Notes: generated by a model not told the origin, from the sequence alone. A stretch of 64,000 bases of DNA from Convolutriloba macropyga (GCF_964194025.1 NC_134474.1:18290001-18354000); one strand, 5' to 3'; shown: positions 12,101 to 39,719, numbered from the stretch's first letter. A program made the numbers and translations.

Positions 12101-12139
12101 TTTTGCGAAGAAGAAAATGTTTCTTCAGAGCAAGCATCT

Positions 12140-15100
12140 CAGCATCGGAGATGGGAATGTTTTATACTAAAGAACAAATCTTTAGCATGTCTGTGACATG
12201 GGAATATATCTCAATAAATAACTGCAAAGTAAAAATGCAAGTAGACACAGGTGCAGATAGCACAGTGATATCATCAAAAATATGGACTGAGCATGGTAAA
12301 CCTCAGTTGGATGGTAAGATAAGACATCTCGAAGCTTATGATGGTCATCAATTAACGCTTCTGGGATCACTTACTTGTGACGTTGAGTGGAACGGAAGCA
12401 GGCTCACGCAAAAACAACTAGCAGTTGTGCAGTCTGATAAAGAATTTGGACTACTTGGTAGAGACCTTCTACCCAAGCACGGTGTGAACAACATCACAGC
12501 CGAGCACCTACCTGCGGTGAAGGGTTACAAAGCTCATGTGAAGTTGATACCAGAAACACAGCCAATGTTCTGCAAAGCCAGAAAAATACCTCTACGTCTT
12601 CAAGACAAGGTCACAGAGAAGCTGGAACAAATGGTCAGACAAGGCATCCTTGAACCGGTACATCTAGGAGGAGTCACTAATGCATCTCCAGTGGTGTGGC
12701 AGAGAAAGAAGAGTGGAGAACTGAGACTTTGCGTGGACTTGAAAGTGCACATCAATGGCAAGGTCATGGATGAGGACTACCCAATACCGGACATGGAGAC
12801 GATCTTTCACAACCTACATGGGGCCTCATACTTTGGCAAAATTGACCTCTCAGATGCCTACTATCAAATTGAACTTGACGAAGAAGCTAAAGATATATGC
12901 ACAATCAACACATCTCAGGGACTGTTCAAGATGTGCCGACTACCTCAGGGATTGAAAAACTCTTCTTCAATTTTCCAGAATTGCATCGAATCAACACTCA
13001 AAGGAATTAAAGGTGTTGTGATCTTTCAAGACGATGTATTGGTGTATGGAACTTCCAAGGAGCAGTTCGACAAGAAAATGCTTGCAGTCAAGAGTCGACT
13101 ACGTGAGACAAACTTTACTATTAATGAGAAAAAATCCAACTCAAAACCAGTCGATAGCGTTAGCTTTTTGGGATACTCCATTTCAAAGGAGGGAATAGCA
13201 CCAGATCCCAAACATGTTGAAAAAACAAAAAATACAGAAGCACCAACTAACAACAAACAACTCGAATCGTTTGTTGGGCTAGCTAATTTTTACGGAAGAA
13301 TGATTCCTGATTTTGCAACAAAAATGCTACCCTTAAATAACATGAGTAATAGCGATTTCTCATGGGGCAAAATGCAACAAAAAGCTTTTGAAGATATAAA
13401 AAATGAATTATTTGCTAACCCACTTGTACAGCCATATAGTTTACAAAAAGGAGCAACAGTTACTACTGACGCCTCTGAAAAAGCCATTGGCGGGGTTCTT
13501 TCGCAAGAAGGACATCCAGTCATATATGTATCGAGAAAATTGACTCCAGCGGAGCAAAACTACTCGAACATAGAGCGGGAAGCACTGGCAATTGTCTTTG
13601 TGGCCACAAGATTCAAGCAATTACTTCTTGGAAGACAATTTACCCTACAGACTGACCACAAACACCTCAAATATCTCTTTGCACCAGACGAGGAGATCCC
13701 GAAGACAGCATCAGCGAGAATTACAAGATGGGCAATAGCTGTAATGGGCTTCGACTATGAGTTGAAGTACACACCAGTGGAGTAGATACCCCATGCAGAT
13801 GCTTTGAGCAGAATGGATTTTGACGAAGACGAATCCGACAACGATCGAGTGTGCTTCGCAATCAATAACATCTACTTCACTCACTGTAATTTGGTGACCC
13901 AAGCAGTAATCAAAACTGTACTTGGAACAAACAGACTCTTCCAAGACATAATGAAACGACAATTGCGGCAATTGGAAACAATGTTCAGAAGCGAAAAAAG
14001 GATTCGAACAACAGAAAGATGCACTTACTTTACATAATGGAATCATCTTCAGAGGTGTTGTTCCTTTCATTCCACCCAAACTACGACACTTGGTTTTGGC
14101 AAAAGCGCATGAGACACATCCCGGAAAGAATGCAACTGAGGCATCAGTCAGAATGATAGCATGGTGGCCTGGCATTACCCAAGACGTTCAACACTTTGTT
14201 AGTACATGTAAGAATTGTCAATTGAACAGGCCTAGCCTGGGAAAAACGGTCTCTACGTGGCCAGAAGCCAACGTTTGGGAACGGCTCTACATGGACTGGG
14301 GTTATGTTAAGGACCAAGGCAATATCTTAGTAATTGTTGACGCGGGTTCTGGTTGGATAGAAGCCTTCCACGCGGGAAATAGAACATCAGAAACAGTTAA
14401 AATATATCTTAGTCAAATCTTTGCAAGATTCGGAATACCAAAAACTTTAGTTTCTGATAATGGTCCTGAATTTGTAAATGGTGACCTTAAACAGTGGTGT
14501 GAATCACTGGGAATTAAGAAAATAGAATCACCCGTCTATCATCCAAGAGCTAATGGACTAGCTGAAAGAGCAGTTCAGACAGTGAAGCGGGCACTTCAAG
14601 CGTGTAGTCCCAAACTTAATGTGTCATTTGGAGCATTCCTGCAAAGGGCACTGATGACACATCGCAACACTTCAAAGACGAGGAGCAAAACTCCAGTTGA
14701 ACTCTTGCTGGGACGCAGAGTGAGACTACCAGCAATAGCAGATTTCGACTTGTGTGAACCCATTCTATTCAAGGCCAACGAAAACACAAAGACAGTTCCT
14801 GCTACCATCATCATCAGGAAGGGCTTGAACACATCTTTCATACAGCCCGAAAACTCAGCACAGACTATTCTAGTGAGCGACAACCAAATTGCAAGACTAG
14901 ACGAGGACAATGTGAAAACTGAACCAGCAGTGGAGGAGACCATATCTCAATCAGAACCACAACCTCAGAACACAGATGTGGGACCTTCACATCAAGATGA
15001 AGCTTCTGCAGCCACATCATCTGCAGAGCACCAACAACCCGAAACCTCAGAGCCTTCAAGAACATCAACCAGGAACAGAAAACAACCTGACAGATTTGGA

Positions 15101-15145
15101 GAACCTATACCCACAAACTTGCTTAAAAGAGGAGGGAGGATGTGA
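12140..15145 (+). pseudogene. pol: Gypsy pol (protease, RT, RNase H, integrase), disrupted
   Basis: PR VDTGAD; RT KIDLSDAYYQI, LPQGLKNSSSIF, FQDDVLV; RH TDASEKAIGGVL, NYSNIEREALA, TDHK; IN H-H-C-C zinc finger, MDWG, SDNGPEF, NGLAERAV. Premature TAG at 13783-13785 and frameshifts around 13960-14040. Confidence 0.95.
15125..15140 (+). other. Polypurine tract
   Basis: AAAAGAGGAGGGAGGA immediately before the TG of the 3' LTR. Confidence 0.9.
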
Positions 15146-17329: not shown

Positions 17330-20300
17330 TGCTTACATTTGAAGGCCCAACACGTCCGCGTAAAATAAAAAGTATTTAAATCCAAATTCGATTATTCTTC
17401 AGGAAAAATTACCTGTCTTTGGTAGTATTTCCGCTGAAAATAGAGAAAATAAAGAGAAAACTTATTCAAACTTTTACTTATTCAAAAAATTGAAAAATTA
17501 TTTCACTTTACTGAAATTAAAAAACACCAACACGAATTCATTTACTGTGAAATCTGAGATATTGTAATTTCAATTAAGGAACGAATATTTTCTGCTTTTT
17601 GCGCGCCTGAAAATCCATTTCAAATTAAATTACTCCTCACTTGAAATCTACTGGTGTTTTTCCACGTCTGTTTTTCATAAAATAATGAACTTTTTTCGTT
17701 TTCGTGACTTTTTCGAATTTGGCCTCATTATAATCAGTAGCTAATTATCATAACTTAATATGTTATCAAAAACTTTTTTAAAGGAAAGCACAATTTTGAA
17801 GTTCTGCTGAAACAGAGAGCCAATGTTAAACTCATCATAAAAGAGATCGAGCTCTAAATATCGCGAGAAAAACTTTTAGGTTCTGTTATTTGTTCAATTT
17901 CTACGTGCTTCTACGTTCAATTTCTATGAGTGCACTTTTGATGGACACGTCTGTGGGCACTTTGGATTAATTCAAGCGCACTCATTAAAGCGGTTTAAGA
18001 TACACACAAAAATCAATAAGTTAACAGATTTGAAATACGGAAATTCAATCGATCATAAGATAATATTTTCAAAAATTGGCAAAACCCAACCCCTTTAACG
18101 AATAACAACGATAAACGCGCCTTAGAGCAGTTAGAGTGTGAGCTGATTCTGCTGATGCAGAAAACTGTTCAGCGCAAAATTTCAATTGAATTGATATTTA
18201 GAATGAGGAACCAATATTGTACAATATTATACAATTAACGAGAACTTCAATAAAATGGCTGACCTACCTTTTTTCAATTAAAACCGTGTGTAAAAAAATC
18301 TTAATATGCCTGATTCTGGCAAAGATTAGATCAGAACGAATATGAAGAAAACTGCTGAAGAAAGCTTTATGGTTAAAGTTTAAAAAAATTGATTGTCAAT
18401 GAGACAAAATTTTTTCTTCATAAAATTGATATTTTAGTCCACGTTTCCTAAGCAAAAAGAACACAACTAGATCCGTAATCCTTATTGACCGTTGTTTCGA
18501 AGAAAGTATTTCATTTTTCACTGCTATTTAGAGCACTTTTTCAAAATTTGACAAAGTTTATTATGAATTTTTTTTTCAATAAAAGAATGAAAAATTTAGA
18601 AAACACAAAGGACCAACATTTCCGCGCCTGAAAATTTAGTGAATTCAGTGGAAAGATATGTGGAAAAAAAAGATATCCAAAACACAAACACCGCTTGAAG
18701 CACAATGAGGCCACCATGCTTTCATGGAGCAATGATTCCGGTCAATTAAGCTGCGTCCTCAATAAAAGAATGAAAAATTTAGAAAACACAAAGGACCAAC
18801 ATTTCCGCGCCTGAAAATTTAGTGAATTCAGTGGAAAGATATGTGGAAAAAAAAGATATCCAAAACACAAACAGCGCTTGAAGCACAATGAGGCCACCAT
18901 GCTTTCATGGAGCAATGATTCCGGTCAATTAAGCTGCGTCCTCAAAAAAGCCATCTATCTGGCGTCAGATATCAACAAGAAATTAAAAAAATTGTTTTTA
19001 CATTCAAATTCAATTATTCTTCAGGAAAAATTACTTGTATTTGGTAGTATTTCCGCTAAAAATGGAGCAAATAAAAAGAAAACTTGAAGAAATCTCGATG
19101 CTTAAAAATATTTAAAATTCAGTTGTTAATGAGAAAAAATTTTTGTTTCAACATTTATTCAATTGTTTTATTCATTCGAAAAAGTGCAAAATTATTTCAC
19201 GTTAGTTGAATTGAAAAATGGAGTGAAATTTTTTTTTTTAAAAAAATTGACATTTTAGTCCACGTTTCCTTAGCAAAAAGAACACTACTAGAACTTTAAA
19301 ACTTTTTGATCGCTGTTTTGATGAAACAATTTTTTTTTCATAGCCATATACAGAAATATTTCAAAATTTGACAAAATTTACGGTGATTTTTTTTCAATTA
19401 GGGAACACAATGGCCCAAGATTTCCGCGTCTGAAAATTTAGTGGATTCAGTGGAAAGATAGTATGTAAAAAAAGAAAAAAATCGAAAAAACAATCAATAC
19501 TTAGAGCACAATGAGACCATCATATTTTCATCGAGCAATGATTCACCTGAAAAAAAACCTGGTAATTTAAGGGGCGCCCTCTAAAAACCCATCTATCTAT
19601 CGTCAGATATCAACAAGAACTAAAAAAGTAAAAACTATTAATATCCAAATTCGATTATTCTTCGGAAAAATTGCCTGCCTTTGGTAGTTTTTCCGCTGAA
19701 AATAGAGCAAACAAAAAGAAAACTTGTATGTCCCAGCAATATACAAAAGTTTTTCAAACTTTGACAATGTTTATTGTGAAAAATTTTTTCAATTAAGAAA
19801 TGAAAACCTTTTAGAATTACGGAACACAAAGGCCCAATATTTCCGCTCTTGAAAATGCAATTTTTTAAATTCAATCCTCATGGGAACTCTTCGAGCGTTT
19901 TGCCATAAATATTAACTTTCAAAAAAACTAACTTTTTTGTTGTGCATTTTTGTTTGTATTCCTCAAATTACCTCATCATAATCAGTAGCTAAGTGTCATA
20001 GCTATCGTATCTTAATAAGTTTCCGAAATTTTCTTTCAAGAGCAAAATACATTATTCCAAAGTGCTATCTGACGTTTTGTGAAGTTCTTCCGAATCAGAC
20101 ACTCAAACTTAAACTCATCATTAAAGAGATCGAACTCCAAATATCGCGAAAAAACTCGAGGTAATTTTTTGTTCAATTTCTACCTGCTTCGGAAATTTCG
20201 TTTCGTCTCTCCAGTGTCAGATGTGATAAATTGGTATCACTCCTTTACTTGATTATTATTCATTACCACAGCAGGTAGCAAGAAAAAAATTTTAAGAAGC

Positions 20301-23300
20301 TTTTATTCGTTGCTCATCTTGTTTGCTGCTTCTATCTTTTGCCTTCCTTAGCACTTAATGTTACCTCATCACTTGGTTTTATGAATCACCTAATTTGGAC
20401 GTTTTTTGGTGTGACAGCACCTAGCAAGTTTCTCTAAATTATCATATTATCCTTTGGAGTCCTGCTTTGCATTGTTCAGCGGCTGTTTTTGCACTGCAAC
20501 TGATCTCCTGTTTTTGCAACTGCAACTGATTTCAATCATGAAATGGTGTGTCCCTCAGTAGTATTAAATTAATCTATTGACCAATCGAATTCAACTTAAA
20601 TTACCCTTTCAAAATTGCGAAAGTATTTCACGTTTCCTGAAAAACACCACTAGAAGTTCAAAACTTAAGGATCGTTGTTTTGACGAAAATTTTACCATTC
20701 CTAACATAATACACGATATTTTCAAAAAAAAATGACAAAATGTTGTGAACATTGTGAAATTTTATTTCAATTAAGGAATGAAAGACTGTTAAGGTTATTG
20801 AACACAAAAGCAAAACTTTTTGCGCGACTGAAAGTCCATTTTGAATTAGTTTTCAGCTTACTGGAACTCCTCAAGCGTTTTGCCACAACTAATTTTCAAA
20901 AATTATTGAATTTTTTTCTCGTTTTATGCAAATTTTTGAAATTTGCCCCAATATAATCAATTGCTACCTTCCATATTTTGTCATATCTTAGTATGTATTT
21001 CATACAAAAAAAATGTTTGAAGCAAAATACCGGCTACCAAACTACTATAAGACGTATTTCAAAGTTCGACCGAATCATACAGTTAATTTTCAAGCCATCA
21101 TAAGAGATTGAACTCTAAATATTGCGAAAAGAACTGTCCCGTTAATGCTGTTTGTTCGATTTCTACGAGCGCGTTTAAAATGCGTTCAACTGCTATTCAT
21201 TGAAGACATAAACATTTATTTTCACGAAAAACCATAATGCTCAAATTGCCGCAGATTCAGTTTTTCTTATTTCTGTTTGCTTTTAAGTTATTTTTTTGCT
21301 ATTTGTCGCCAGTATAGGCACTTTAGATAAACCGGTGCGCACTCATTTGGACAATTAAAAATATACATGCAAAAAAATCAAACGATAATTCAACCGATCA
21401 TAAGATAATATTTTCAAATATTAGCAAAACCCATCTCCTTTAACGCATATTAACAATAAATGCACCGTAAAGCAGTTAAAGTGTGAAATTTTTCTGCTGT
21501 TACAGAAAACTGTTCAGCGCAAAGTTTCAATTGAACTGATATTTAGAATGAGGAACCAATATTTTACAATATTATACAATCAACGAGAACTTCAATAAAA
21601 TGACAAACCTAACTTTTTTTCAGTTAAAAATGCATGTGTTAAAAAAATCTTAAGAAACTAATTCTGGCAAAGATTAGATCAGAACGAACGTAAAGAAAAC
21701 TGTTGAAGAAAGTTTTATGTAAATAGTTTATGAAGTTTGGTTGTCAAAGAATCAAATCATCTTTTCAAAAGAAAAAAGTAGTTTAGTCCACGTTTCCAAA
21801 ACGAAAAGAACACTACTAAAGCTTTAAACCTTGTGGTCCACTGTTTGCTGTTTTTACGAAACAATTTGTCTTTTCATAGCAATATACAGATCATTCACAA
21901 AAACTTTGACATGGTTCATTGTAAAAAGCCTATTTCAATTAAGATTTATCAAGAACTGGAAAACTTATAGAGTTACGGCATAAAATCGCGACATAAACGC
22001 GCGACCTTTTGGCGCTTGAAAATCATTTTTCTTTAATTTAATGCATATTGGAGCTTGTCTAGCTTTTTGCCATATATGTTTTATATATTATTTTCTTCGC
22101 TGTGCATTTTTTTTCGAATTTCGCAAAATAACCCATTATAATCAGTAGCTACTTTTCATATTTTGCATAGCATAGTATGTCTTCCAAAACTTTTTGTAAA
22201 GCAAAACTTTTTTTTTCCAAACTACTATCAGACGTATTTGTAAGTTCTGCCGAAACAGACAGTTAAATTTAAGCTCATCATAAGAGATTGAAATCTAAAT
22301 ATTGCGAAAAAAAACAGTCCAGGTAATGTTATTTGTTCAACTTCTACGTGCTTCTACGTTCAATTTCTTTAAGCACGTTTAAAAAGTGTTCAATTGCAAC
22401 CAATTAAATACATTAACATTTGTTTTCACGAAAAACCGTAATTTTCAAATCGCCGAATTCAGATGCTTCAGTTTTCTTTATTTCTGTTCAGCTTAAGTCC
22501 TTTTTTCCTATTTGCTGCCAGCATGGGCACTTTAGATAAATTCATGCGCACCCATTTGGGCTACTAAAATATACACAAAATATCAATAAAGTTACCGAAA
22601 TCAAAAAGAAACATTCAATTGAGCGTAAGACATTGTTTTCTACGGTTATCAAAAACCAACTTATTTAAAAAATAATATCGATAAACACGCTTCAAAACAG
22701 TTAGAGTATGAACTTCTTCTGCTGGTAAAGAAAACTGTTCTGCGCAAAATCTCAATTGAATTGATATGTAAAATAAATCAGTATTTTACAATATTATACA
22801 TTTAACAAGTAAGTCAATAAATTCTCGTGATTGTCATCATATCTGAGTATGATTTCACTCATATATTTTAAATGTCAAAAAAGTCAAATCTTTGTTTTTC
22901 ATTGTGCATTATTTTTATTTTTGCAAATCACCCAACTTAATCATTAGCTACCTGTCATATCTTGATGTTTTCCATATTTTCTTTTAAAAGCAAGGTGCAT
23001 TTTTTGAAGCTACTATCAGACGTATTTTGAAGTTAGGGCGAAGCAGACAGACAAAATCAAACTCATCATAAAAGATCGAACTATAAATATCGCGAGAAAA
23101 ACTGTCCAGGGAATTTGATTTGTTCAATTCTACGTGTTTCTACGTTCAATTTATAAGAACGCATTAGATTGAGTTCAATTGCTAGCCATTGCTAAAATTA
23201 ACATTTGTTTTTACGAAAACTAAGTCTCAAAACGCCAAATTCAGACGCTTCAGTTTTCTTTATTTCCGTTCGCTTTTATGTCCATGTTTTGCTATTTGAT

Positions 23301-26300
23301 TCCAGAATAGTCACTTTCAATAAATCCGTGCGCACTCATTCGAGTGATAAAGGATGAACACACAAAATCAATAAGTTAAGTGATTTGAAAAACGGAATTT
23401 CAATCGAACGTAAGATATTAATTTCTAATGTTAGTAAAAACCAACTTATTTAAAGCATAATAACAATAAAGACGCTTCAAAACAGTTAGAGTATGAACTT
23501 CTTCTACTGGTAGAGAAAACTGTTCTGCGCAAAGCTTCAATAGAATTTATATGTAGAATGAGGAATCACTTTTTTACAATATTATACTTTTAACGAGAAT
23601 TTCAATAAAATTCTCGTTATATCGATCATATCTTAGTATGTTTTCACTCATATATTTTAAATTTCAAAAAGTCAAATTTTTTGTGGCGCATTTTTTTTGA
23701 ATTTTTCAAATTACCCATCATAATCATTAGCTACTTGTCATACATATCTTGGTATGATTTCTATATTTTCTTTTAAAAACAAAGTACATTTTTTGAAACT
23801 GGTATTCTTTGTTTGTTTGTTTTTAGGTCCATTTGTAATATTTGATGCCAGAATTGGCACTTTCAAAAAATCCGTGCGCATTCATTCGAGCGATTAGGGA
23901 TACAAACAAAAATTCAAAAAGTTAACTGATTTAAAATACGGAAATTCAATCGAGCGTAAGATATTAATTTCTAATGTTCGTAAAACTTTTTTAAAGCATA
24001 ATAAAAACAAACGCACTTCATGGCAGTTAAAGTATGAACTCCTTCTGCTGGTACAGAAAACTGTTCAGCTAAAAATTTTCAATAAAATAGCTAACATATT
24101 TTCAGTAAAAATTGTAAGTAAAAAAGAATCTTAAAATGCCTGATTCTGAAAAAAATTTAGATCAGATTAAATATAGAGAAAATCGTTGAAGAAAGCTTTA
24201 CTTTTCGTAGCAATTCAAAGAGCTCTTTCAAAAATTTTGACAAAGTTTTTTTTGTGATTTCGCAAAATTACCTTATCATAATCAGTAGCTACTTGTGATA
24301 TTTATCATAGCTTGGTATGTTTCCAGTATTTTATGTTAAGAGCAAAATACATTTTTCCAAACGAATATCAGAAGTATTTTGATGTTCTTCCGAAACAGAA
24401 GGTTGGAATTAAAGTTATCATAAGAGATCGAACTATACATATCGCGGGAAAAACTGTCGCGGTAATGTTGTTTGCTCATTTTCTACGTGCTTCTACGTTC
24501 AATTTCCAGGAGCGCGTTTGAAATGTGTTCAATTGCTACCCATTGAAGAAATGATCATTTGTTTTCACGAAAAACCGTAATGCTCAAATCGCCGAAATCA
24601 AAAGCTTCAGTTTTTTTATTTCTGTTTGCATTCTAGTACTCATTTGCTATTTGTTGCCAGCATGGGCACTTTCGATAAATGGATAAGCATTCATTCAGGC
24701 GAATAAAGATACAAAAAAATCAAAAAACTGATTTAAAAAACGGAATTTCAATCAAGCGGGAGATATTTTTTCTAATGATAGCGACCCCCAAGCATTTAAA
24801 ACACAAAACGATAGACGCAATTCAAAGCAAATATAATGAGAACTTCATCTGTTTCACAGAAAACTGTTCACCTCAACGTTTCAATAGAACTGAAATCTAG
24901 AATGAGGAATCAATATTTTAGGATATTATACAATTAACGGAAATTTCGAAAAAGTGTCTGACCTGTTTTCAGTAAATATCGTATGTAAAAAATAAAATCT
25001 TAAAAAACCTGATTCTGAAAAAAATTAGATCAGAACAAATATAAAGAAAACTGCCGAAAAAATCTTAACTTTCTCAACAATATACAGAACTTTTTCAAAA
25101 CCTTTGACAATGTTTATAGTGATTTTTTTTAAAATTGAATATATTTTTGCCATATATTTATAAGTTTTGCCATATATTTTAGTTTGAAAAATTGTCAAAT
25201 TTTTTTTTCCGTTGTGCAATTTTTTCGAATTTCGCAAATTACCTGATCATAATCAGTAGCTTTTTAAATTTACCAAATTTACTTGTCAATATTACCATGT
25301 CTGCTATTGTTTTTATTTTCTTTTAGAAGTAAAATACAACTTTTCACCATACTATTAGAAGTATTTTGAAGTTCTGTCGAAGCAGACAGTCAAGATTAAA
25401 CTCATCAAAACAGATCGTACTATAAATATCGCGAAAACAAATTTTGGGTCAACGTTATTTGTGTAATTTCTACGTGCTTCTACGTTCAATTTCTAAGAGC
25501 GCGTTTAGAATGTGTTCAATTGCTACCCATCGAAGAAATGAACATTTGTTTTTACGGAGATTAGATCAGAAGAACTATAAAGAACACTGTTGAAAAAAAA
25601 CTTTTCACAACAGTATACAAAATTTCTCAAAATCTTTGATGTTTATTGGGATTTTTCTAAATTGAGGAATGGAAAACTTTTATTAGAGTTACGAAACACA
25701 AAGGTGCAACTGTTCCATGCCTGAAAATTTTTTTGTAATTAATTTACTCCTTACTGGAACTCTTCTAGCGTTTTTCCATATATTTTAAATTTAAACAGGC
25801 AACTTTTTTGTGCAATATTTTCGAATTTTGCAAATTACCCTATCATAATCAGTAGCTACTTGTCATATTTATTAAACATTGGCATGCTTTTTTTATCTCC
25901 TTTTGAAATTAAAATTAATTTTTCAAACAACTATCAGAAGCATATTGGTGTTCTGTCGAAACAGAATGTTAAAAACTCATCATAAGAAATCGAACTTTTA
26001 AAATTGCGAGAAAAACAAAACTGTCAAGGTAATGTTATTTGTTCAATTTCTACGTGTTTCTACGTTCAATTTCTAAGAATGTATTCAATTTCGCATTTAG
26101 AATGTGTTCAATTGCTTTCCATTGCAGAAATGAACATTTTTTTTCGTGAAAAACCGTAATGTTCAAATTGTCGAAATCAGAAGCTTCAGTTTTCGTTATT
26201 TCTGTTTGCTTTCAAGTCCTTTTTTGCAATTTTTGCCAGCATGGGCGCTTTTGATAAACCAATGTGCACTCATTCAGGCAGTTAAAGATATACACAGAAA

Positions 26301-27990
26301 GTCAATAAGTTAACTGATATACAAAAAAAACGAGAAATCAATCGAGCATAAGATACTAATTTTTATTTTCAGCAAAACCCAACGCATTTCCGGCATAAAA
26401 ACAATAAACACATTTCAAAGCAGTTACAGTATGAACTCCTGTTGTTCAGAAAACTGTTCACCTAAACAATTCAATTGAATTGATATGAAGATATGAGGAA
26501 TTAATATTTTACGATTTTATACAATTAAAAGAAATTTCAAAAGAATAGCTAACCTATTTTCAGTAAAAATCGTTTGTAAAAAAAAGTTCAAAACACCTGA
26601 TTCTGACAACGATTCGATCAGAACAAATATAAAGAAAACTGTTGAAGAAGCTTTTCAAAAATTTTTTTTAATTTGAAAAATGAAAAACTTTTAGAGTTAC
26701 GGAACACAAAGGCGCAACATTTCCATACCTGAAAATCCATTTTTAATTAATTTACTCCTTACAGGAACGCTTCTAGCGTTTTGCAATATATTTTAATTTT
26801 CAGAACATGCAAATCTTTTCAGTCGTTGCGCCATTTTTCCCATTTCGCAAATTACCCTATCATAATCAGTAGCTACTTGTCATATTCATCATATCTTGGT
26901 ATGTTTTCAAGAAAAACTTTCGATGTAATGTTATTTGTCCAACTTCTACCTGCTTCGGACATTTTGGTTCGTCTCTTCTGTGTGATGTGACAAATTGGTA
27001 TCACACTTTAACTTGATAAGTATTCAGCATCACAGCGGGTAGCAAGAAAAAAGTTTGCTTACGAAGCTTGCATGCGTCGCTCAACATGTTTACTGCTGCT
27101 ATATTTGTCTTCCTTAGCACTTAATCTTTACTCATCACTTCGTTTCCTGAATCACTTAAACCAGACGTTTTTTTTACGTGACAGAACCTAGGAAGCTTCT
27201 CTAATTTATCAAATTATCCTTTGGACTCCTGCTCTGCAATGTTCAACGGCTGTTTTTGCACTGTAATTCATCTCCTGTAGTTCATTAAATGGTGCTTCTC
27301 TCAGTAGTGTTGACATTACCTTTTGAGCAATTGAATCAAATTGACTTTACCCTTTGGAGAACTCTGGCTTGGTGCTTTCAATCACCGGCTTCTCTTTACG
27401 TAATTGAGATCAGTTTCAGAAAAGCTCCATTGACGTAGAGATTAAATGTTAGTTGCAACTTGATATAGGTTGCACAACACCACGAGCGCGTTTAGATTGT
27501 ATTCAACCGTTGTGCATTGAAGACATTAACATTTTCATGAACAACGGTAATGCTCAAATGACTAAATTCAGACGCTTCAATTTTCTTTATTTCTGTTCGT
27601 GTTCTTAAATACTTATTTGCTATTTATTGCGAGTATGAGCACTTTCGATAAATCGGAGCGCACGTGTTCGATCGATAAAAAATATTACCAAAAAATCGAT
27701 AAATTAACTGATTTTAAAAAATGGAAATTCAATTGAGCGCTATCAATTATTTTCTAAGATTAGCAAAACCCAACCCATTCAACCCACATTTTAAAGCAGT
27801 AAGTATGAACTCATTCTGGTGGTACACAAAACTGTGGATCGGAAAAATCAATTCAATTGATATGTAGAAAAAGAAATCAATATTTTACAATACTATACAA
27901 TTACCGCAAAATGGGCAACCTAACTACTTTTAGTAAAAATCATATACAAATAGAATCTTAAAATACCTGATTTTGACAAACATTAGATCA
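17330..27990. repeat. Large diverged mosaic tandem array (~0.6-1.3-kb variably deleted units)
   Basis: Recurring anchors ATAATCAGTAGCT (~17730, 19978, 22138, 24279, 25249, 25846, 26862), TCTACGTG(C/T)TTCTACGTTCAATTT (~17900, 22343, 23129, 24483, 25469, 26049) and AGAAAACTGTTC (~18159, 21505, 22730, 23514, 24056, 24859). Confidence 0.9.
18578..18943. repeat. Recent 183-bp tandem duplication
   Basis: 18578-18760 and 18761-18943 differ at one position that I could see. Confidence 0.9.
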
Positions 27991-28050
27991 GAAAGTCAAA
28001 AGTTCTGCAGCGCTAGTCCAGATAAATCCAGTGCAATAACCAATGTGAGT

Positions 28051-29233
28051 TCAAGATGTCATCCAGGTTCTCCTAACTTCAGCCTTTTCCGCAATTTCCC
28101 TCCAATCAGAAAAAAGCTCAGCCTCTATCCTCTGCCTGTAAGCGTCTAGATTCTTTGTTTTTAACACGTGATCATTGAACGGATTGTCATCAGTGGAACA
28201 GAAGAAAGTATAATAGACAACCTGCAAAACTGGGAATAACAGACAATCTATGAGGGATATTTTGTCCCCCATGAAGTATGGCTTATCAGCTAAGAACTCA
28301 GAACATGCATCCATATCGTCACCCCACGCTTTTATAATCTGTTCACGCGTCATTCTTCCAGTTCCCTGTGCCCAAACGCTTTTCTTAATTTGACTACCAA
28401 TTACATATCCCACCAAATGGCCAGCAAGTCTATTTCCCACGGCAAGTCTATTTCCCACGAAATGATTCAACATTAGTTTTCCATTATCTGATAAATTGTA
28501 TCTCCATGCCAACGCAGCGAATACAGATCCGTCACTGATCATGCGTTGAAACGCGCGTGAAATAGCCTTTTCTCTTGCGGTCAAATGAGCGTTCATGTCA
28601 ACGTTGTAGTCACGCATCAGTCGCTCGATGATGTGAAAGGAATCTGGTATTGACTCACCTGTAAGAAACACTAATTGCATAGATCAGATTGGTATATCAG
28701 CTTCGTTTCGCAGAAATTGTCAACTCATGTGAAATACTACTATTTTTTAAATATGCCAACATTTGAAATGGAAATCTCTCCGCGGCAAAATGTACTATAT
28801 TTAAGCTTTTTACTTCAAATGCTCGTAGACCAGCTACGCGCAAAACACGCTGTCTAAAAAATAGCCATTGCAGCACAGTAGGTTATCATTCTTGCACTCT
28901 CAGAAGCAAAACAGATTTAGATCAAGATTTGTAAGATTGCAACTTCACATTTCGCGTCATAGGAGGCAAATAATGCCATCAGTGGCGCATCTAAATTGCA
29001 TGTTTTTGCTAGAAGCTAAATCAATCAACTATTCATTGCTAATACAAACACTAACCTTTATATTCTACCCAAGGCGACTTCTTTGTGTGTGGATGAGTTG
29101 GTGACTTTGTTGTGACTGTGTACGGAATCTTAGCCCATCTGAGGAACATTTCTACACGAATAGGGAAAGGCGAAACTGATATGGAACCACCATATGATGG
29201 AAAGGCATGAATGACAATGTCCCCAGCGCCCAT
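28051..29233 (-). CDS. FAX/metaxin-like GST-fold protein, paralogue A (261 aa); exons 29233-29056 and 28658-28051
   Basis: SPFPIRVEMFLRWAKIPY...PWVEYKG|ESIPDSFHIIERL...QGTGR...DDMDACSEFLADKPYFMGDK matches the FAX pattern SPF.LK.E..LR...IPY / PW.EY.GE.I.DS / QG.GR / DL.ALS..L..K.Y..G. Phase-1 GT-AG intron of 397 bp; spliced length 786 nt is in frame. Confidence 0.9.
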
Positions 29234-29786
29234 TACGTCAAGTGGGTTTAGCAAGATAAACTTACCTGAAATTTTGATCAACACTAACGCAATTATCCAT
29301 AAATGTTGAGCAAAAATTGTTTGCCTATCAACAAGATTACAGTAATTTAATTCAAATTCCAGTTTGAATAGCCACCAACTATTCTTGAATTCATTGACGC
29401 GGGGTTCCATTACTTCTGGACGATTCACTTGATCCTATTTTTCCCACGAAGAACGTACACGAAATAATTCGTTTAAACTTCTTCGATGGTCATTTAGATA
29501 AAATTTTTAGCAGAGTATCATGTCACATCGGACACTTGTCTAACTACTATGTTTAGCTTCTGCACAAAAGAGCATAGGGATAAATTTTGAATGATATGTT
29601 GGATGAAAATTTTTACAATATACACTAAACGATATTCATAATTCCAATAGGGCTAATTGTTGACTTCCGGTAAAAACAGAATAATGAAATGTAAAAACAG
29701 AAAATCACATTTCTATTGAAAAAGGAATAGAAAAATTGGTTCATTCTGCATTAATCACGCGGCAGCTAGCATGATGACCGCACAAA

Positions 29787-32700
29787 TTAAGATGGCGTCC
29801 ACGTTCTCTTAGAGTCAGCTTTCTCCGCAATTTCCATCCAATCAGGGAAAAACTCTGCTTCGATCTTTTTCCTGTACGCGTCTAGATTCTTTGTATTCAA
29901 CATATGATCTTTGATAGGATTGTCGTCAGTGGAACAGAAGAAAGTATGTTCTACAACCTCCATGACTGGGAAAGTCAGGCAATCTATTAACGAAACTTTA
30001 TCTCCCATGAAGTAGGTTTTATCAGCTAAAAACTCAGAGCAGGCATCCATATCGTCAAAGCAAGATTTCAAAATCTGCTCACGCGTCATTCTTCCTGTTC
30101 CTTGAGCCCAAACGTTTTTCTTCATTTGCCCGCCCGCGAACTGCGATACAATGCTGCCCAGAACTCCGTTTCCTAAGAAATGTTTGACCATCAGTTTCCC
30201 ATTGTCCGATAAAGTAAATCGCCAGGCAAATCCAGCAAATAGGGATCCTTCGCTGAGCATACGTTGAAAAGCGCGTGAAATAGCTTTCTCTTCAGCTGTC
30301 AAATGAGCATCCATGTCAAGGTTATAGTCCTTCATGAGCCGCTCAATTATAATAAATGAGTCTGGTATTGATTCGCCTAAAATAGAGAAAACGATCATGC
30401 TGACCGAATGATTCGCTGGTTTAATAAAATACATTTTGTCAGTTGACATAAACAAGGAGGCTCGGTAATGTGCGATCGCACATAAGGTTCCGACCCCGCT
30501 CATTCACAAATTTGGCATAATTCTCTACCAAATGAGGAACAGATAGAAACACTGTATATGAACGAAAAGATAGCCTCCAAAGCAAATAACTCTGTGGAGT
30601 AAAGACTGATGCATTAGATTGATGAGATATGCCAATATTAAAAAAAAGGGTCAAGACGAACAGCAAAATTAAACAACAACAACAACAACAACAAACATTA
30701 ATTACATCAAAAACTTTATGTCCGTTTTAAAAACAAAACTTAATATCAAAGTCAAAATAGTGTCAGATGAAACTGAAACTAAACAAAATAACTTGCAAAA
30801 GATATGGGATCAGTCAATAATAAGGCTTGGTAACAATTAGACAATAAAGAACAAAAGCTGTTAAAACAGTTGAAAACAAGTTGAAAAATTCGCTAGTATT
30901 TTTAAAAAACAATAATTTCAAAGTAATAAAAACAATTGGAAATCAAGTAAAAAGTCCCATAGTTTTAAAATTTCCAATGCTTCTACATACGGGAATTAAG
31001 AACTGTCGGTATTCAATTCTTAATGCGGTTACAAAATAACAACAAATAGAGAACAAACAAAAAATCAGTAAAAACTTGCCAGAAAACGCTTTCGAAGCCG
31101 TAGAGCCATACTTTGGCCCTCAATATATGTTTGATTGCAGCCTCGACAAACATCGATCAATTGTTATACGACCTCTAATTAATGTAACTAGGTAACAAGT
31201 AGACAAAGAAAAAGGCAAAATTAAGTAATAATAGTTTTTTTCGAAAAAACAATTGTTTCCAAAGAGATCAAAGCCATTAATTACAAAATGAAATAATAAA
31301 ATAGGTTCGTTTATTCTTCCAAGGTAAATCCTTGAGACCTGCAATTATCTAGAATATGTCTTACGTCTACAAAAAGAACGTCAAAAACGACTTAGATCAA
31401 AAACTAATTTACTTTTTTTTGTGTGCAAAACCCGTTTCGAATCCAGTACAGTCATAACGAATTTTTAAAACCTTAGATTTTGTGACACCAATCCCTTCTG
31501 ACACCTTCACTTGACTACAAAAATGTAATGTGTGGCCTGTAATTAACGAGACTAGTTAACAAACAGAAAAAAATGAACAAAAATTGTGAAGTTAAAACGT
31601 GTTTTATTTTGGAAAACAACTGCTTTCAGAGTCATGAAAGCCATCAGTTATCTACTATTATCCAAATATCTGCTCATCTATTTTTCCGTGAAGACCAATC
31701 AAACCGTGTTATTCTACAGGAAAATAACCATACCCGTGTTATTGTACGACTAAAAAACAAAATAAGAAGATAAAAAAATTATTTGAAATTCTTCAAGAAA
31801 GTGGAGTCGAATCCGTTAAAACCATAATCTAAATCTTCAAGGATCATACTATTATCAATTGTGCTTTATTTTGAACGCCAATAATGTGATATATGAACTG
31901 TCAATAGCGTGATAATGTGACAAATTTAGAAAATGTGAAAAATGGGCAAATACCTAAAAATAAAATAAAATTTTAAATCTAGTAGTATCAAAGCAAGAAA
32001 ACCATAACTTAAGGCATAAAACCGCATTAATGATTGGACTTAAATTCAGTAGAAAGAGGAAGCATTCTTTCATGGCTGACACTAATCTACAAGTTGACCA
32101 AATTAAGTGAAAAATAGAGGCAAAGTTCAATAAGCCATTATTTATTTAAAAACCAAAGTTTTTTAAAAGTCAAAACGACCATAAGCTGTCAAGTAATAAA
32201 CTAGACAAACTAATTTGGAGCTAATTAGGAAGTCAATAGGACCTATTAATAGTGAGCTTTGATTTGAAATTTTCTTTGAAATAATATAAAAAAGATCGAT
32301 TTTTTTTTTAATAAAAAGACCGACTGATTACAATCCGAATTATTTTTGGATTGTAACAGTACACGATTGGTCCAAAACTAGCCATGCTAATGCTGTTTGT
32401 CAATTAAGAACACTTAATTTTTCGAGTGTTATAGATATAGATATTTTGTTATTTAAAAAATCAAAAATAAATGCCGCGTTTTTGATAATCAACGAGTAAA
32501 GTTAGCAAAAAACGGCAAAGTTTTAATTACAGAGCAGTCCCAACCGAAGTTGGAGAAATGGCCCTCTTTTTAATCTACAAAGAACGTGTTGGTGGTGTTT
32601 GGGTGTGTACTTCCTGCAAATTTAATCAAAGTGGACTAAAGAAACTTATTTCGTGCTGTTTTTGATGAACTCTGAATTTTAAAATATTTAGCCAGAATTT

Positions 32701-33626
32701 TTAACAAAAAAATAGAAATAGCCTAGAATGTTTTTTTTGTCTTTAGCCATAAAATCAATAAACATTTTTAAAAAGAAAATTTAACAAATTTTATCATAAT
32801 TGGCGAAATTGTAGTCGAAAATTGGCAAAAATTCCGGAAAATGTGAATAAAATCAACGGAATCCACTCTATTTTCTCAAAAGTTTAAACCTCGATAACTC
32901 CCTGTAAAAACGAAAATCAAAAAAGCTTTTTAATTCCATATTCTACGCTGGACAAGCTTTCTAATGATACCAGTCTCAACTCTCTACGGTGAATATATCG
33001 ATCGGCCAAAATTGACTGAACAAAAAAAAACCATTTGAGTATATAGTTCCTCCCCCCTCAAGAGGGTCGGAACAAAAAGAACGTCAGTTGATAAAATTCA
33101 TGATTTGTCTGAACGTAGAAAATGCTTTTCAAAAAATTTGCCCCTCAATCATCGAAAAGCTGTACCTCTCTGTTATTAGTTGCGTACAGTTAACCATTCC
33201 AGCATTCCGTAAATAAAAATTAGTCTTCAAGAATTTTTGATATCTACTTTTGTGATGAAAGCTTGTCTCCGTAAAAGTTTTTACCTTTGCGCGTAAACGG
33301 CTTTGTATAAAACATAATTTTTTTATTTTACAATCGAAATTCTAGGAATCTGTTTTACTGTTGCCCCAGAGGTCATAATATAAAAATAGCATTTATTTCG
33401 GAACAGATATTATCGTTAATGTACGTAGTTGGAGAAAACTTCTCCGACCTTTATACTCCATCCAAGGTGTCTTCTTCGTGTGAGAATGAGTTGGACAGTT
33501 GGTTGTTACCGTGTATGGAATCTTTGCCCATCTAAGAAACATTTCAACTCGAATAGGAAAAGGTGAGGCTGATATGGAGCCACCGTAAGGTGGAAAGGCG
33601 TGAATGACAATGTCTTCAGCACTCAT
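29787..33626 (-). CDS. FAX/metaxin-like GST-fold protein, paralogue B (255 aa); exons 33626-33449 and 30376-29787
   Basis: Same motifs as paralogue A; phase-1 GT-AG intron at the same codon (3072 bp); spliced length 768 nt is in frame. Confidence 0.85.
31500..33075 (-). mobile_element. Dispersed repeat copy 2 (inverted homologue of 3113-4700) inside the intron of paralogue B
   Basis: Terminus CCCTCAAGAGGGTCGGAACAA at ~33055-33075; internal hairpin CCAAC-CGAA-GTTGG at 32540-32553; colinear similarity to copy 1. Left boundary approximate. Confidence 0.55.
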
Positions 33627-33755
33627 GTTGCCAATTGAACTTATCTGAAAGTTTGCTGAAAATGAGAGCATTTCAAATTATGATTAATCATCCTAAAATG
33701 TCGGTTCTAACATAGAGTAATTAAATTTTATCAACCTGTTCAAAACAGTCAAACG

Positions 33756-34617
33756 TTAGATTTTATTATGACCATTGTCTAACGGTTTCCAATTCCTTCT
33801 AGACAATTTACTCGCTGCAATTTCTTCCCAGTCAGGGAACAACTCGTTTTGCAACCTGCTTCTATATTCGTTGAGATTAAGTCTTCCAATAATGCCATCT
33901 CGTAACGGACTCTCGTTTCTCGAATTTTCTGATGTATGGTAAGCAACTTGTAGGAACGCAAATGAGATGCAATCAACTGAAGACATTTTATCACCCATTA
34001 AGTACGGTTTGTCCGATAAATAAAATGACAGCGCATCAAGGTCGCCACTGCATGTCTGCAAAATGTGTTCATGTGGCATTCGTCCGATTCCCTGAGCCCA
34101 AAGTTGTTTCTTAACCTGGTTAGCTGCAAGATATGAGGCAGCAATACCCCTCAACTTTTTCTTCCTGAAAAAAGTTTTGATGGTATTTCTACCACTGTCT
34201 GACATCAAGAAACTCCACGCCGACCCACTGAAAATAGTCCCTTCGCTCAGCATTCGCTGAAGAGCATGAGATATAGCTTTCTGCTCCGATGTTAAATGCC
34301 CATCCATGTCTATTTTGAAGTCCTTTTCAAGTCGTTTGATGATGTAATAGGAGTCAGCAATTTCTTCCCCTAAATTAAACACTCTTCGGATAACAATTTT
34401 AGAAAAGTTATCTACGCCTTACTCACGCGTTACTTTATTCACCTTTATATTCAATCCAAGGTGTCTTCTTCGTTCTTTTGTGCAACGCATTTCTCAACGT
34501 CGTCATATAAGGAATGCTTGCCCATCGAAGAAAGGCTTCTACGCGAATCGGAAAGGGTGACGCTGATATGCATCCTTTCAGAGGAGGAAACGTGTGTAGT
34601 ACAATATTAGAGGCCAT
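33756..34617 (-). CDS. FAX/metaxin-like GST-fold protein, paralogue C (262 aa); exons 34617-34443 and 34369-33756
   Basis: SPFPIRVEAFLRWASIPY...PWIEYKG|EEIADSYYIIKRL...QGIGR...DLDALSFYLSDKPYLMGD; 73-bp phase-1 GT-AG intron; spliced length 789 nt is in frame. Confidence 0.9.
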
Positions 34618-35535
34618 TTGAAACTCCCAACATAGACGACTTCTTGACAGTTTATACAAACGATTATTAAGATCCCAACTAGAAACTTCAGATATGATAT
34701 CTTGTCACTGGGCGTAGTAATTCCTGAAAATAACCGAGATTTCGGACAAATTTATCTAAAACAACCCGCGGGTGGGAATCAATTTTAGGTGTGGAGGGTT
34801 TCAAAGTGCTTCTATTACAGTTAATTTCACAGCATAAGATTTAATATTTAATCAATATCGGCGCTCTATACATTGGACTTTTGGCAGCAAACTGCCGCCG
34901 ATTGAGTGAACCTGCTTTAATCTCAACAAATCGAATTAAAAAACCGATAGGATTTAAATCAATGCTACAAGAACACTTGAGTTAGGCAATAACATCACAT
35001 GCAAAAATTATTTCTGCAAGTGTACAATAAAAATGACCCAATGGTAATTAACCCCTCGTTTGAGAACAATTTTAAAAAATAATTTGGAAAGAGGCAAATG
35101 TGTACTCAAAAACTAGATCAATTTTAAAACCTCGAATTTTGGCAATAAATTGCAGCTTCATGACTAAAAAGTTATCAGGTTAACAACGTAAAATAAGGAT
35201 CTATTCAGTTTTGGCATCATGTCTTTTTTTCTGAACTCACTTACAAACTCTGAGTTCCTATGTAGCATGTATTATGTGAAAAATAACACGTGTGGCTATA
35301 GGTGTCATTTATACCCCCCACTAGGCTGGGGGATCAAAATGATCCGTGGGTCAAAGAGGAAAAATCCCGAATATGGCGTTTCAAATCAATCTCAGAACTT
35401 GCAAATTTTGAACATTTCAGGGTTAAATTATTGATTAAGTTCAGAAGATCACTGGTTCCATTACATCGCTACAGTATAAGATAGACTCCTACCAAACCTT
35501 TTCTCTTCAAGAACAGTTTTTGAAGACCGTAATAT

Positions 35536-38500
35536 GAAATGGGTAAATCAAGAAATGCCCCTCCGCAACCCTGGGTGAATATTGGCTGATCCGGAGCCCT
35601 CCCAGCACTACGTCTTCAGTTTCATATCAATGAATGCTATGACAAGGACTAGTAACCCAAAATGTCCTACCTGCAAGAAGTCAGTGAAAAATGATATGAC
35701 GGCCAATTGTTGCGAAAAGTGTGGCAACTGGTATCACGGAGTTTGTGTTTCTCTGAAATCGATGAAGTTAAATGGCTTGGCGCATCCCGAAATTGTGTTT
35801 GGCTTTGCGATATAGCAATATTTTTACCACTGATGCTAAAATTACCTCCGTTCTTGAATCATTCGAAAACAAATTTCAACTGTGCTCGATAATGTAATAC
35901 CCAAGGCCATTGAAAAAGTTGCTGAAATGGAACCTGATTCTGTAGCTGTACACCGCGTTCGCCAAATGTTAACCAGAGCAATGTCATCATTCATCGAGAT
36001 AGAGACGACAGTATGAAACTTATTGTTACTGGTGTACCCGAAAGTGGAGATTCTACTAACGGTCGGATTGACAATGACTTCACAGAAATAGATGGTATTT
36101 TGAATCACAATGGACTTAAAGCCGACGGTAATGTTGTCTCTTTTAGACGGCTGGGCAAATCGATGTCACAGAGTGGTGAACGTCTTAAATGTAGACCACT
36201 CTTAATTACTTGTGAGAGTCCCCATTTCTTATCTAGATGTTTTGCACGAAGTTTATAATTGCAGGACTACAAATATCCGGTTAATCTCAAAAATTTTCTT
36301 TCCTCGTCCGAACGTGAAATCGAAAAGAAAATTCTTCAAAAACGGTACAACATGATTCATAGGGAAGTTAAAAAAAAACTGATTTTAGAATCAAAAAGCT
36401 TAAATTGTACTATAAGGCCGATAATGTTCCTGTCATGGAGGTAGTTTCATGACTGGAAAGCCTAAATTGTTTGATTCTTAATTTCCAATCAGCCAGAAGC
36501 CTTGAGATATGTCACAATATTTTGAAATTAGCTTTGACCTCGGATGCAAATTTTGTCTTCCGTACTGAGACCTGGCTCTCGGGAGAAATCAATATTTCTG
36601 AAATGTTTTTGGGTTCCTGTTATCAAATAATATCACGTAGTGATCGGGAAGTTGGAGAAAATGGAGGAATTCTGATTGCATCACGTTCTAACGGCGATTT
36701 AGAAGCCTTAGATTTGACGATTGCAGCTTTTTCTTTTTGTTGTTGCTGTGCTGTTATCTGTTAAGGAATTTTATCATTCTTCGTTAATGTCTACATACCT
36801 CCAGCGTCGTGGCGTTACTCGATTGAAATATCAACCATTGCAAATTGTTTTAGCAAATACATCAATTTTTTTTCTTCTTTTGCTTATTCTAGAGGTATGG
36901 CAAATTACTCCAACTATTTTTTTGGTGGCTAGAATTTTCCGAGAACTCATTGAGCAACCTTAACTGCTAAATGCACTGTCGAACGACAATTTCTTGATAT
37001 TGTCAATGACTGTGGTCTAAACCAGTTCATTGACATACCAACACACAGTCGCGGCAACATTTTAGATCTCGTTTTAGTAGACACTCTCTCCTATGCGGTT
37101 CTAGATGCCTCTTTTACTGACCACAAAGTTATTTGCTTTCAAGTGGCGTTATATAGTCGCAGCACTTCTGCAATGGACTATGCTAAATCGTCTTTCAATG
37201 TACTCAATTTCAACACAGAATTTAAAAAATTTTATCGGTTTTTGTCTTCTGATCCGTCCCTTCACCTTGACTACTATCAATCTTGGTACGATTACTTTTA
37301 GTCGGCTCTGTCAAAATCTTTGAAAATTAAGCGCAAAAAACGACTTGACGTGCCAATTTTCATTTCTTCTCAAACAATGCATCTATTGAACAAAGGTGAC
37401 ACAGTTACCAGAAAACTATCAAAAGCGTTCTCTACCAATGTAGATTTTCAGAGGCTAAAACTGAATGAAGACATTGATACTTCTATTGAACTGGGTAGAT
37501 TCTCCTTGGTTGAACAGCTCAACTTGAAAAATACGAAGCATTGTAATCGATTGCTGCGGTCACTGAAAACAAATTCGATGTATACTTCCTCGATGTTTTT
37601 CGGCAGCATCAAAGCTGTTAGCAGCTTTGAGAAAGCTCAGCTTTTTAATACGTTTTTCAGTTCGGTTTTCAAAGCCAGCACTTGCCTTTTACCAGAACTC
37701 CAAGCGGATGGTAGCATCCACTTGGAAGATTTCTCTTTCACAATTGACGACGTGTACAATTTGCTAAGCAGAATTCCCGACGATTCATCAACGGGCATGG
37801 ACGCAATTCATTCTTTTGTACTAAAAGAGTGTGCTCAACAATTGTCACTATTGGTCTTTGAGTTTTTCTTGCGGAATACTAAGTTTCAGCAGTGGCCTTC
37901 TCAGTGGAAAACATCAACAGTTACTCCGTTTTACAAATCTGGGTCAACATCCGATGTGACAAACTACAGACCTATCAGCATCCTACCTAAATTGTCAATT
38001 GTTTTTGAGCGTTTAATACTCAACTTCATTTACTCACGAGTCTGTTCCAAAATAAAACGTGATCAGCACGGGTTCATGAAGTATCGTAGCACGGTCACTC
38101 AACTCATTTCATACTTGGACAAAGTTTATGCTGCTACAGATAAAACTCACGTTTGCTTGACTGTATATTTTGATGTGAAAAAAGCTTTTGATTCAGTTTC
38201 GCAGGGGTTATTGTCACATAAATTATCTTCATTCGGTTTTGATCACAATCTCCTAATGCTCTTTCAATCATATCTCACCGGTCAAAAGCAAGTTGTTAAA
38301 GTTGAGGGATGTTTTTCAAATGAAGCAGTGGTGACGTCAGGAGTCCCTCAAGATAGCGTGCTGGGTCCACTTGTCTTTATCATTTTTTAACGACGTTACA
38401 GACTCAATACAACATTCTGAATATTTTCTTTATTGCGATGACCTTAAATTGTTTTTGTTTTTCAGTCGACAAAATTTAAAATGATATAGACAGCTTATCC

Positions 38501-39140
38501 TCCTGGTCAATCAAGGGTCGCGCTTGAAACACGTGGGTTCAATTGTAGATTTGGGCATCACTGTGAGCAGTTTATTGTGTTGGGATAAGCATGTTGACCT
38601 CAGCATTGCAAAGGCTACAAAATTTTTAAATTTGTTGAAGCGTAGTGCTCCAATCGGAGTTTATGTTTCTAGAAGAAAGCTTTTATATAAATCGATGCTG
38701 TCGTCTATTTTGGAGTACGGTTCGCCTGCGTGGTATCCTTCAATTTTGGCTTTGCGAAAATTGGAAAAGTTTCAACACCGCTGTCTCAAATGGGTTCTGA
38801 ATAGTAAGAAGTCTTACCTTGAAAATTTGAAAATCTTGGACATCTTGCCCGTTTCTTTTCAGTTAATAAGAACAGACCTACTCCTTCTATGGAAATTACT
38901 AAATGGTTTTATTGATTCGAATCTTAATGCAAATTTTGTCACCTCGACATCAAGAATTCATCATTTTGGACATTTTGAAATTTCAAAAAACAGGAAATTT
39001 AAGACAGATGAAAACTTTTTGAATCGATCTCAACGTGCCGCAAATCATCTGATGCGAATGAAGATTATCGACTTTGACATGTCTAAACGTCAGTTTACGT
39101 ATGCAATTGACCAGTTTTTACGCACTCGAATTGAATACTT
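35536..39140 (+). mobile_element. CR1-group LINE, near full-length, decayed; 3' end lost in gap
   Basis: ORF1 (~35640-36450): PHD finger CPTC...CEKCGNWYHGVC...WLCD, then KLIVTGVPE...RRLGK...RPLLI. ORF2 (from 36449): APE motifs ETWL, GGILI, LDLVL, TDH; RT NYRPISIL, QHGF, DVKKAFDSV, SGVPQDSVLGP, YCDDLKL. Many frameshifts. Confidence 0.92.
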
Positions 39141-39600
39141 NNNNNNNNNNNNNNNNNNNNNNNNNNNNNNNNNNNNNNNNNNNNNNNNNNNNNNNNNNNN
39201 NNNNNNNNNNNNNNNNNNNNNNNNNNNNNNNNNNNNNNNNNNNNNNNNNNNNNNNNNNNNNNNNNNNNNNNNNNNNNNNNNNNNNNNNNNNNNNNNNNNN
39301 NNNNNNNNNNNNNNNNNNNNNNNNNNNNNNNNNNNNNNNNNNNNNNNNNNNNNNNNNNNNNNNNNNNNNNNNNNNNNNNNNNNNNNNNNNNNNNNNNNNN
39401 NNNNNNNNNNNNNNNNNNNNNNNNNNNNNNNNNNNNNNNNNNNNNNNNNNNNNNNNNNNNNNNNNNNNNNNNNNNNNNNNNNNNNNNNNNNNNNNNNNNN
39501 NNNNNNNNNNNNNNNNNNNNNNNNNNNNNNNNNNNNNNNNNNNNNNNNNNNNNNNNNNNNNNNNNNNNNNNNNNNNNNNNNNNNNNNNNNNNNNNNNNNN
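39141..39600. other. Assembly gap (N run) between two converging retroelement tails
   Basis: 460 N. Confidence 1.
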
Positions 39601-39719
39601 AATTGTATATAAAACCAGCAGCTGGGAAAGTAAAACAAAAGACACAGCATTAGAAAACAAACAACTAACGACCAAAGCAGATGAGTCAAACAAACAGCCT
39701 CCTTTCTTCAACCACAGCT

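Follow-up and report, generated by a model that had tools for sequence, protein, structure and literature searches.

Three tandem FAX-like genes and the sequences between them

The stretch of DNA analysed here (the window) comprises 64,000 nucleotides (nt) of the acoel Convolutriloba macropyga (NC_134474.1:18290001-18354000), and positions are counted from its first letter unless a chromosome or contig is named. The work concerns three intact two-exon FAX-like genes, designated C, B and A, which follow one another head to tail on the minus strand and which may form a trans-spliced operon (Table 1). The exons were searched one by one against Pfam, and GST_N_4 followed by GST_C_6 was identified in all three proteins, with E-values of 1.8e-14 to 1.6e-10 for GST_C_6; GST_N_4 was split over both exons. 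A single phase-1 intron interrupted the identical codon in C, B and A, with lengths of 73, 3,072 and 397 nt, respectively. Within exon 2, B and A were about 71-73% identical, and C was 44-49% identical to B or A. The model of gene C was 100% identical to RefSeq XP_075250235.1 (262 amino acids, aa), and exon 2 of gene B showed 100% amino-acid identity to XP_075250259.1 and XP_075250763.1. Of these two, XP_075250259.1 (255 aa, B-type) is encoded by a second copy of the cluster, described below, and agreed with the gene B model; it carries the same RefSeq name as XP_075250235.1, 'failed axon connections homolog [Convolutriloba macropyga]'. A 'LOW QUALITY, partial' RefSeq model of B, which reads through both acceptors, was set aside as an apparent artefact of homology modelling and given no weight as RNA evidence, because its first 15 residues lie out of frame, directly after a stop codon, and require a one-base deletion. 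The three genes are thus tandem duplicates derived from a FAX-type gene with a glutathione S-transferase (GST) fold. They share both domains with the FAX/FAXC family (Pfam GST_N_4, PF17172, and GST_C_6, PF17171; Drosophila failed axon connections), which is here lineage-expanded to three copies, or six counting the second cluster.

Table 1. Positions of the genes, candidate processing signals and associated features in the window, in the 5' to 3' direction of the genes (the slash in a donor marks the exon-intron boundary).
Feature	Position	Strand	Remarks
Proximal upstream block of C	34725-34962	-	Candidate promoter and outron (putative function)
TTTCAG acceptor candidate of C	34729-34724	-	106 nt before ATG; weakest among the three genes
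Gene C exon 1	34617-34443	-	GST_N_4; donor AAG/GTGAAT
Gene C exon 2	34369-33756	-	GST_N_4 and GST_C_6; stop TAA 33758-33756; protein 262 aa
AATAAA, likely poly(A) signal of C	33767-33762	-	Overlaps the last codons of C; putative use
C-B intercistronic gap	33755-33627	-	129 nt from the stop of C to the ATG of B
Two tandem TTTCAG acceptor candidates of B	33661-33656 and 33650-33645	-	29 and 18 nt before ATG
Gene B exon 1	33626-33449	-	Pfam match, GST_N_4 and/or GST_C_6
Dispersed repeat in B intron, non-coding	30405-33073	-	2.67 kb; absent from the second cluster
Gene B exon 2	30376-29787	-	Stop TAA 29789-29787; protein 255 aa
ATTAAA, candidate poly(A) signal of B	29351-29346	-	Sole AATAAA/ATTAAA hexamer in the B-A spacer; putative use
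TTTCAG acceptor candidate of A	29271-29266	-	32 nt before ATG; followed by GTAAGTTTATC
Gene A exon 1	29233-29056	-	Pfam match, GST_N_4 and/or GST_C_6
Gene A exon 2	28658-28051	-	Stop TGA 28053-28051; protein 261 aa
Two AATAAA hexamers	27628-27586	-	420-460 nt past A stop; both A and the cluster likely end here

A first-pass annotation of the window had described three co-oriented FAX-like genes, with 129 nt from the stop of C to the ATG of B, and both statements were borne out, the former by the exon models, Pfam matches and RefSeq proteins and the latter by recomputed coordinates. The stop of B lies 553 nt from the ATG of A, and the two intercistronic distances fall within the range of spliced leader (SL) operons (about 100 nt to <1 kb). 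Only about 111 nt separate the stop of C from the acceptor of B. A TTTCAG acceptor had been placed before each ATG; all four sites are present, and two of the coordinates given for them were off by one. When the expectation was taken from the window-wide rate of this hexamer, 0.26 occurrences were expected within 110 nt of the three ATGs, against the four seen (Poisson P about 1.5e-4, a post hoc value). No ATG occurs from acceptor to start codon in B and A. The first-pass annotation had further noted that TTTCAG-RTAAGTT was kept between A and B amid diverged untranslated sequence, and this motif proved to be part of an 18-nt island, CAAA[C/A]TTTCAG[A/G]TAAGTT (16/18 identical), which covers the acceptor and the next seven bases and is the only alignable part of the A and B flanks.

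As for 3' end signals, AATAAA had been stated to be absent between the stop of C and the ATG of B. This holds strictly between the two codons; an AATAAA overlaps the last codons of C itself, 105 nt before the first acceptor of B and 116 nt before the second. The ATTAAA of the B-A spacer lies 436 nt past the stop of B, and the AG of A's acceptor follows 79 nt further on. The distance from the stop of A to the AATAAA pair is close to the length predicted for the 3' untranslated region (UTR) of B. If these hexamers are used, roughly 50-105 nt would separate the poly(A) site from the next acceptor at both junctions. Such junctions would be operon-like, because their spacing agrees with the operon spacing mode of about 100 bp in Macrostomum lignano and Caenorhabditis elegans (PMC8629364). 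Three ATGs occur in the C-B gap, and one of these shares the reading frame of B.

Spliced leader genes in the genome

Leader trans-splicing in acoels has been reported only recently. It was published for Symsagittifera roscoffensis, in which 30.2% of genes are trans-spliced; the word operon is not used in that report (PMC9911081). A 22-mer of the published leader occurred 3,744 times in the C. macropyga genome, compared to about 95 occurrences of the reversed control. Together with a GTR donor it occurred 1,262 times; most of these copies form tandem arrays on C9:23.1-23.8 Mb, and the copies in the arrays read GCCTAATTGTTGTGATAAACTTATTAAATAG/GTAAGTA. The published S. roscoffensis sequence of 32 nt (PMC9911081) contains the 31-nt leader found in C. 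macropyga upstream of the GTAAGT donor. In the fold of the SL RNA gene the donor lies inside a stem, and a second hairpin is located 3' of the donor. Judged by sequence and fold, C. macropyga has SL RNA genes, which is consistent with the SL trans-splicing published for its relative. No family for the acoel SL RNA was found in Rfam, and the C-B-A locus gave no Rfam match. In the literature searched, no publication joined operons, the spliced leader and Xenacoelomorpha. The earlier suggestion of a lineage with trans-splicing and poorly documented operons thus fits an acoel in which the leader and its gene arrays are present and for which no operon literature was found.

Many of the other leader copies are leader-headed retrocopies. 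Processed leader-headed retrocopies of FAX were not found in the genome, which holds only six copies of exon 2, all in the two clusters. Inverted leader pairs, with an antisense copy abutting a sense copy, were observed in C. macropyga (L015:1460-1560) and in an S. roscoffensis contig (L009:19230-19290, minus strand). These pairs may represent the termini of a leader-headed mobile element.

The untranslated leader of A begins with GTAAGTTTATC (29265-29255), a perfect 10-nt complement of the spliced leader bases GATAAACTTA, and trans-splicing at A's acceptor would recreate the TAG/GTAAGT donor of the SL RNA itself. The possibility that RTAAGTT after the acceptor represents an antisense leader copy or a leader-pairing site was considered, and the match was treated as chance, because the window contains about ten 10-mers of this kind by chance and the empirical P values were 0.014 for A (about 0.01-0.06 over the background tests), 0.40 for B and 0.07 for the flank of the S. 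roscoffensis gene. Gene B shares this complementarity for no more than 7 nt.

A second cluster copy, the Symsagittifera relative and the surroundings

The entire C-B-A cluster is present a second time, in diverged form, at a distance of 74 kb (C7:18392298-18396375). The block common to both copies corresponds to window positions 21393-34962 (13.6 kb). Since the flanks are unrelated on both sides, a leftover haplotype was ruled out, and the second cluster was treated as a segmental duplication. The identity between the copies was 80% upstream of C, 84% in the leader of C, 92-94% in the intron and exon 2 of C, 96.9% in the C-B gap, 98.3% in exon 1 of B, and 98.5-99.4% from exon 2 of B through A and beyond; pS (the proportion of synonymous differences) in C was 0.16. 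This increase towards B and A suggests an old duplication with later gene conversion over these two genes. In the second copy, exon 1 of C' carries a frame-shifting 131-nt deletion, the acceptor of C' reads TTTCAAG, with the AG shifted by one, and CATAAA stands in place of C's AATAAA. B and B' differ by six synonymous codons and one non-synonymous codon, which indicates purifying selection on both genes. The comparison of the two clusters does not discriminate between an operon and separate promoters.

The first exon that the RefSeq model of C' (XP_075250765.1) includes lies 12 kb upstream and is foreign and transposon-like. This exon is a duplicated Ser/Thr/Gln-rich stretch (C7:18407834-18408004 and C7:18420622-18420792). 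The model is probably a transposon-gene chimera, because its first exon is related to long open frames on many chromosomes.

In the comparison with SYMSAGITTIFERA, the nearest outside relative was a gene on an ENA contig (P0002), which clusters at at least 90% identity with a RefSeq FAX protein of S. roscoffensis. In that species, the one studied in PMC9911081, the FAX orthologue is a single gene, in contrast to the cluster in C. macropyga. It is B-like (69-75% identity) and has an 8-kb intron. No FAX neighbour was found within 10 kb downstream or about 25 kb upstream of this B-type gene, and its flank is filled by a long terminal repeat (LTR) retrotransposon and large reading frames on the other strand. 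On the strand of the gene itself there was one match of 66 aa at 33% identity, which failed in Pfam. Its upstream region has CTTTTAG 57 nt before the ATG and lacks the RTAAGTT motif. A maximum-likelihood tree of the exon-2 proteins gave (C,(S. roscoffensis,(A,B))), for which the support values were 89/92 and 86/87, so that A and B would have duplicated after the split from Symsagittifera; C may be either older than the species split or fast-evolving. Upstream of the S. roscoffensis gene (L023:10001-18765, ctg22257l), same-strand frames of 486, 1469, 719 and 196 aa were observed beside an LTR retrotransposon, and none of these four gave a Pfam match.

Upstream of C, positions 34618-35617 form 1 kb of unique, non-repeated DNA. 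The conserved block within it (Table 1) is the only upstream sequence shared with the second cluster, and its GC-rich parts are perfectly kept at an overall identity of 80%. Beyond the unique 1 kb lie a repeat fragment (35618-36400) and then a reverse-transcriptase element on the other strand. No other same-strand gene was found directly upstream of C, and C would therefore be the first gene of any unit. No sequence resembling its conserved upstream block was found before B or A. The intron of B is long because the dispersed 2.67-kb repeat was inserted into it; this repeat has many near-full-length copies in the genome, at 84-94% identity and on most chromosomes (9,979 first-look candidates).

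Elsewhere in the window, the region downstream of A (17800-28000) is occupied by numerous related segments, each a few hundred bases long and 74-87% identical to one another and to L010:1-2200; this degenerate local repeat field was not resolved by Tandem Repeats Finder. An LTR-retrotransposon gag-pol frame with protease, reverse transcriptase, RNase H and integrase is located at 11241-15145 (+), and a second reverse-transcriptase element at 37320-39612 (+) is interrupted by an N run (39141-39600).

One transcription unit or several

A single transcription unit comprising C, B and A is the favoured interpretation, with a probability of about 0.5. RNA polymerase II would start in the unique 1 kb upstream of C and read through the three genes. 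The transcript of C would be cut and polyadenylated past the AATAAA that overlaps its last codons, and the 31-nt leader would be spliced to B at 33656 or 33645. B would then be cleaved past the ATTAAA at 29351, the leader would be spliced to A at 29266, and the unit would end at A, past the AATAAA pair near 27600. The predicted interval from poly(A) site to next acceptor would be roughly 75-105 nt at the C-B junction and 50-70 nt at the B-A junction. The premises of the trans-spliced paralogue operon proposed in the first-pass annotation stood, namely an acoel lineage, leader arrays and operon-like poly(A) and acceptor spacing at both junctions. Support for one unit comes from same-strand, intact genes with strong 3' splice sites 18-32 nt before the ATGs of B and A, from abundant SL RNA genes, from gaps that leave little room for other sequence, and from unique, partly conserved DNA upstream of C only. 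B' is, moreover, under selection although it lies behind a damaged C'.

Several observations weigh against a single unit. Tandem duplicates are often close by origin alone, whatever their mode of transcription, and this trivial explanation for their closeness makes the locus a weaker case than syntenic clusters of unrelated genes. The linkage of C and B is not conserved in S. roscoffensis, the only relative available, since its B-type gene stands alone. The 106-nt leader of C holds one out-of-frame upstream ATG, and C's acceptor is for this reason weak evidence. The use of AATAAA and ATTAAA as poly(A) signals in acoels is assumed. Between the two cluster copies, the C-B gap has four mismatches where 6-9 would be expected, a degree of conservation not clearly above that of nearby introns. 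Finally, a weak donor-like CAG/GTTGAT occurs inside this gap at 33738/33735, 19 nt past the stop of C.

The genes could instead be plain tandem duplicates, each transcribed separately from a compact promoter of its own that lies in the gap or within the 3' portion of the upstream gene, with the leader optional. Arrays of paralogues occur commonly and require no operon, and the leader is received by about 30% of acoel genes without operon membership. The solitary S. roscoffensis orthologue presumably has its own promoter, the persistence of selection on B' behind a broken C' would be explained, and a TATA-like GATAAA lies at 33732, about 75-85 nt before B's acceptors. We nevertheless consider own promoters less likely than a single unit. 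They would have to be accommodated in the short interval between the stop of C and the acceptor of B, and in about 60 nt between B's likely poly(A) site and A's acceptor, in a 1.18-Gb genome with transposon-rich spacers elsewhere, and nothing like the conserved block of C precedes B or A.

It is improbable that the acceptors are ordinary cis-splice sites joined to upstream untranslated exons, an explanation most plausible for C. Donor-like GT sites scoring 6-7/9 do occur upstream of C (among them 34998, 35240, 35244, 35497 and 35670), and the RefSeq model of C' uses a first exon 12 kb upstream; that exon resembles a transposon, and the window contains no counterpart of it. For B and A, the upstream exon would need to sit inside the neighbouring gene or its 3' UTR. 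Upstream of their acceptors, the C-B gap contains one weak donor-like site and the B-A spacer contains four, and none is of the AAG/GT form of the real donors at this locus. Leaderless read-through, in which C and B would form one mature two-cistron mRNA of the Adh-Adhr type, possibly with removal of an 80- or 91-nt intron from CAG/GTTGAT (33738/33735) to B's acceptor, is less probable still: the donor-like site past the stop of C scores 6/9, the implied intron length matches C's own 73-nt intron and dicistronic paralogue mRNAs have a precedent (Brogna and Ashburner 1997, as related in PMC2776167), but the donor is weak and reads CAT/GT in the second copy, B would need internal or re-initiated translation, and the acoel leader system makes such a route unnecessary.

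The Drosophila Adh-Adhr pair, as far as it is described in PMC2776167 after Brogna and Ashburner (1997), resembles the C-B-A locus in that a promoterless-looking duplicate lies close behind its paralogue and depends on read-through. It differs in that Drosophila lacks leader trans-splicing and the mature mRNA, in the same account, is dicistronic. Given the leader system and the well-placed acceptors, separate mRNAs would be likelier here than a dicistronic one. With the SL operons of C. elegans and M. lignano (PMC8629364), the locus shares a spacing of about 100 nt between genes on one strand, a 3' splice site just before the downstream ATG, a candidate poly(A) signal of the upstream gene shortly before that site, and the presence of SL RNA genes in the organism. 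In contrast to the SL operons of nematodes and flatworms, C-B-A is known from DNA sequence alone, its members are paralogues rather than unrelated housekeeping genes, acoels have one known leader type and no known SL2-like specialised leader, and no xenacoelomorph operon has been described in the literature searched.

If C, B and A do form one unit, a promoterless copy would have arisen by tandem duplication with no more than about 100 nt of 5' flank included, and the expression of such a copy would persist because read-through RNA can still receive the leader at the acceptor of the copy. Tentatively, at somewhat less than even odds, we propose a duplication-born operon in which B and A kept about 60-110 nt of upstream sequence, lack promoters and are rescued by the leader from read-through of C; it would be among the first operons of Xenacoelomorpha.

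Acoels hold a debated, possibly basal position among bilaterians. If true, the proposal would mean that one more phylum joins the few animals known to produce polycistronic RNA, and it would be relevant to the question of whether operons evolve easily in any lineage with leader splicing. The locus is interesting mainly as a possible duplication-born operon: it would be a clean example of the origin of an operon through a duplication that leaves a promoterless copy, with leader splicing acting as a rescue device for promoterless duplicates.

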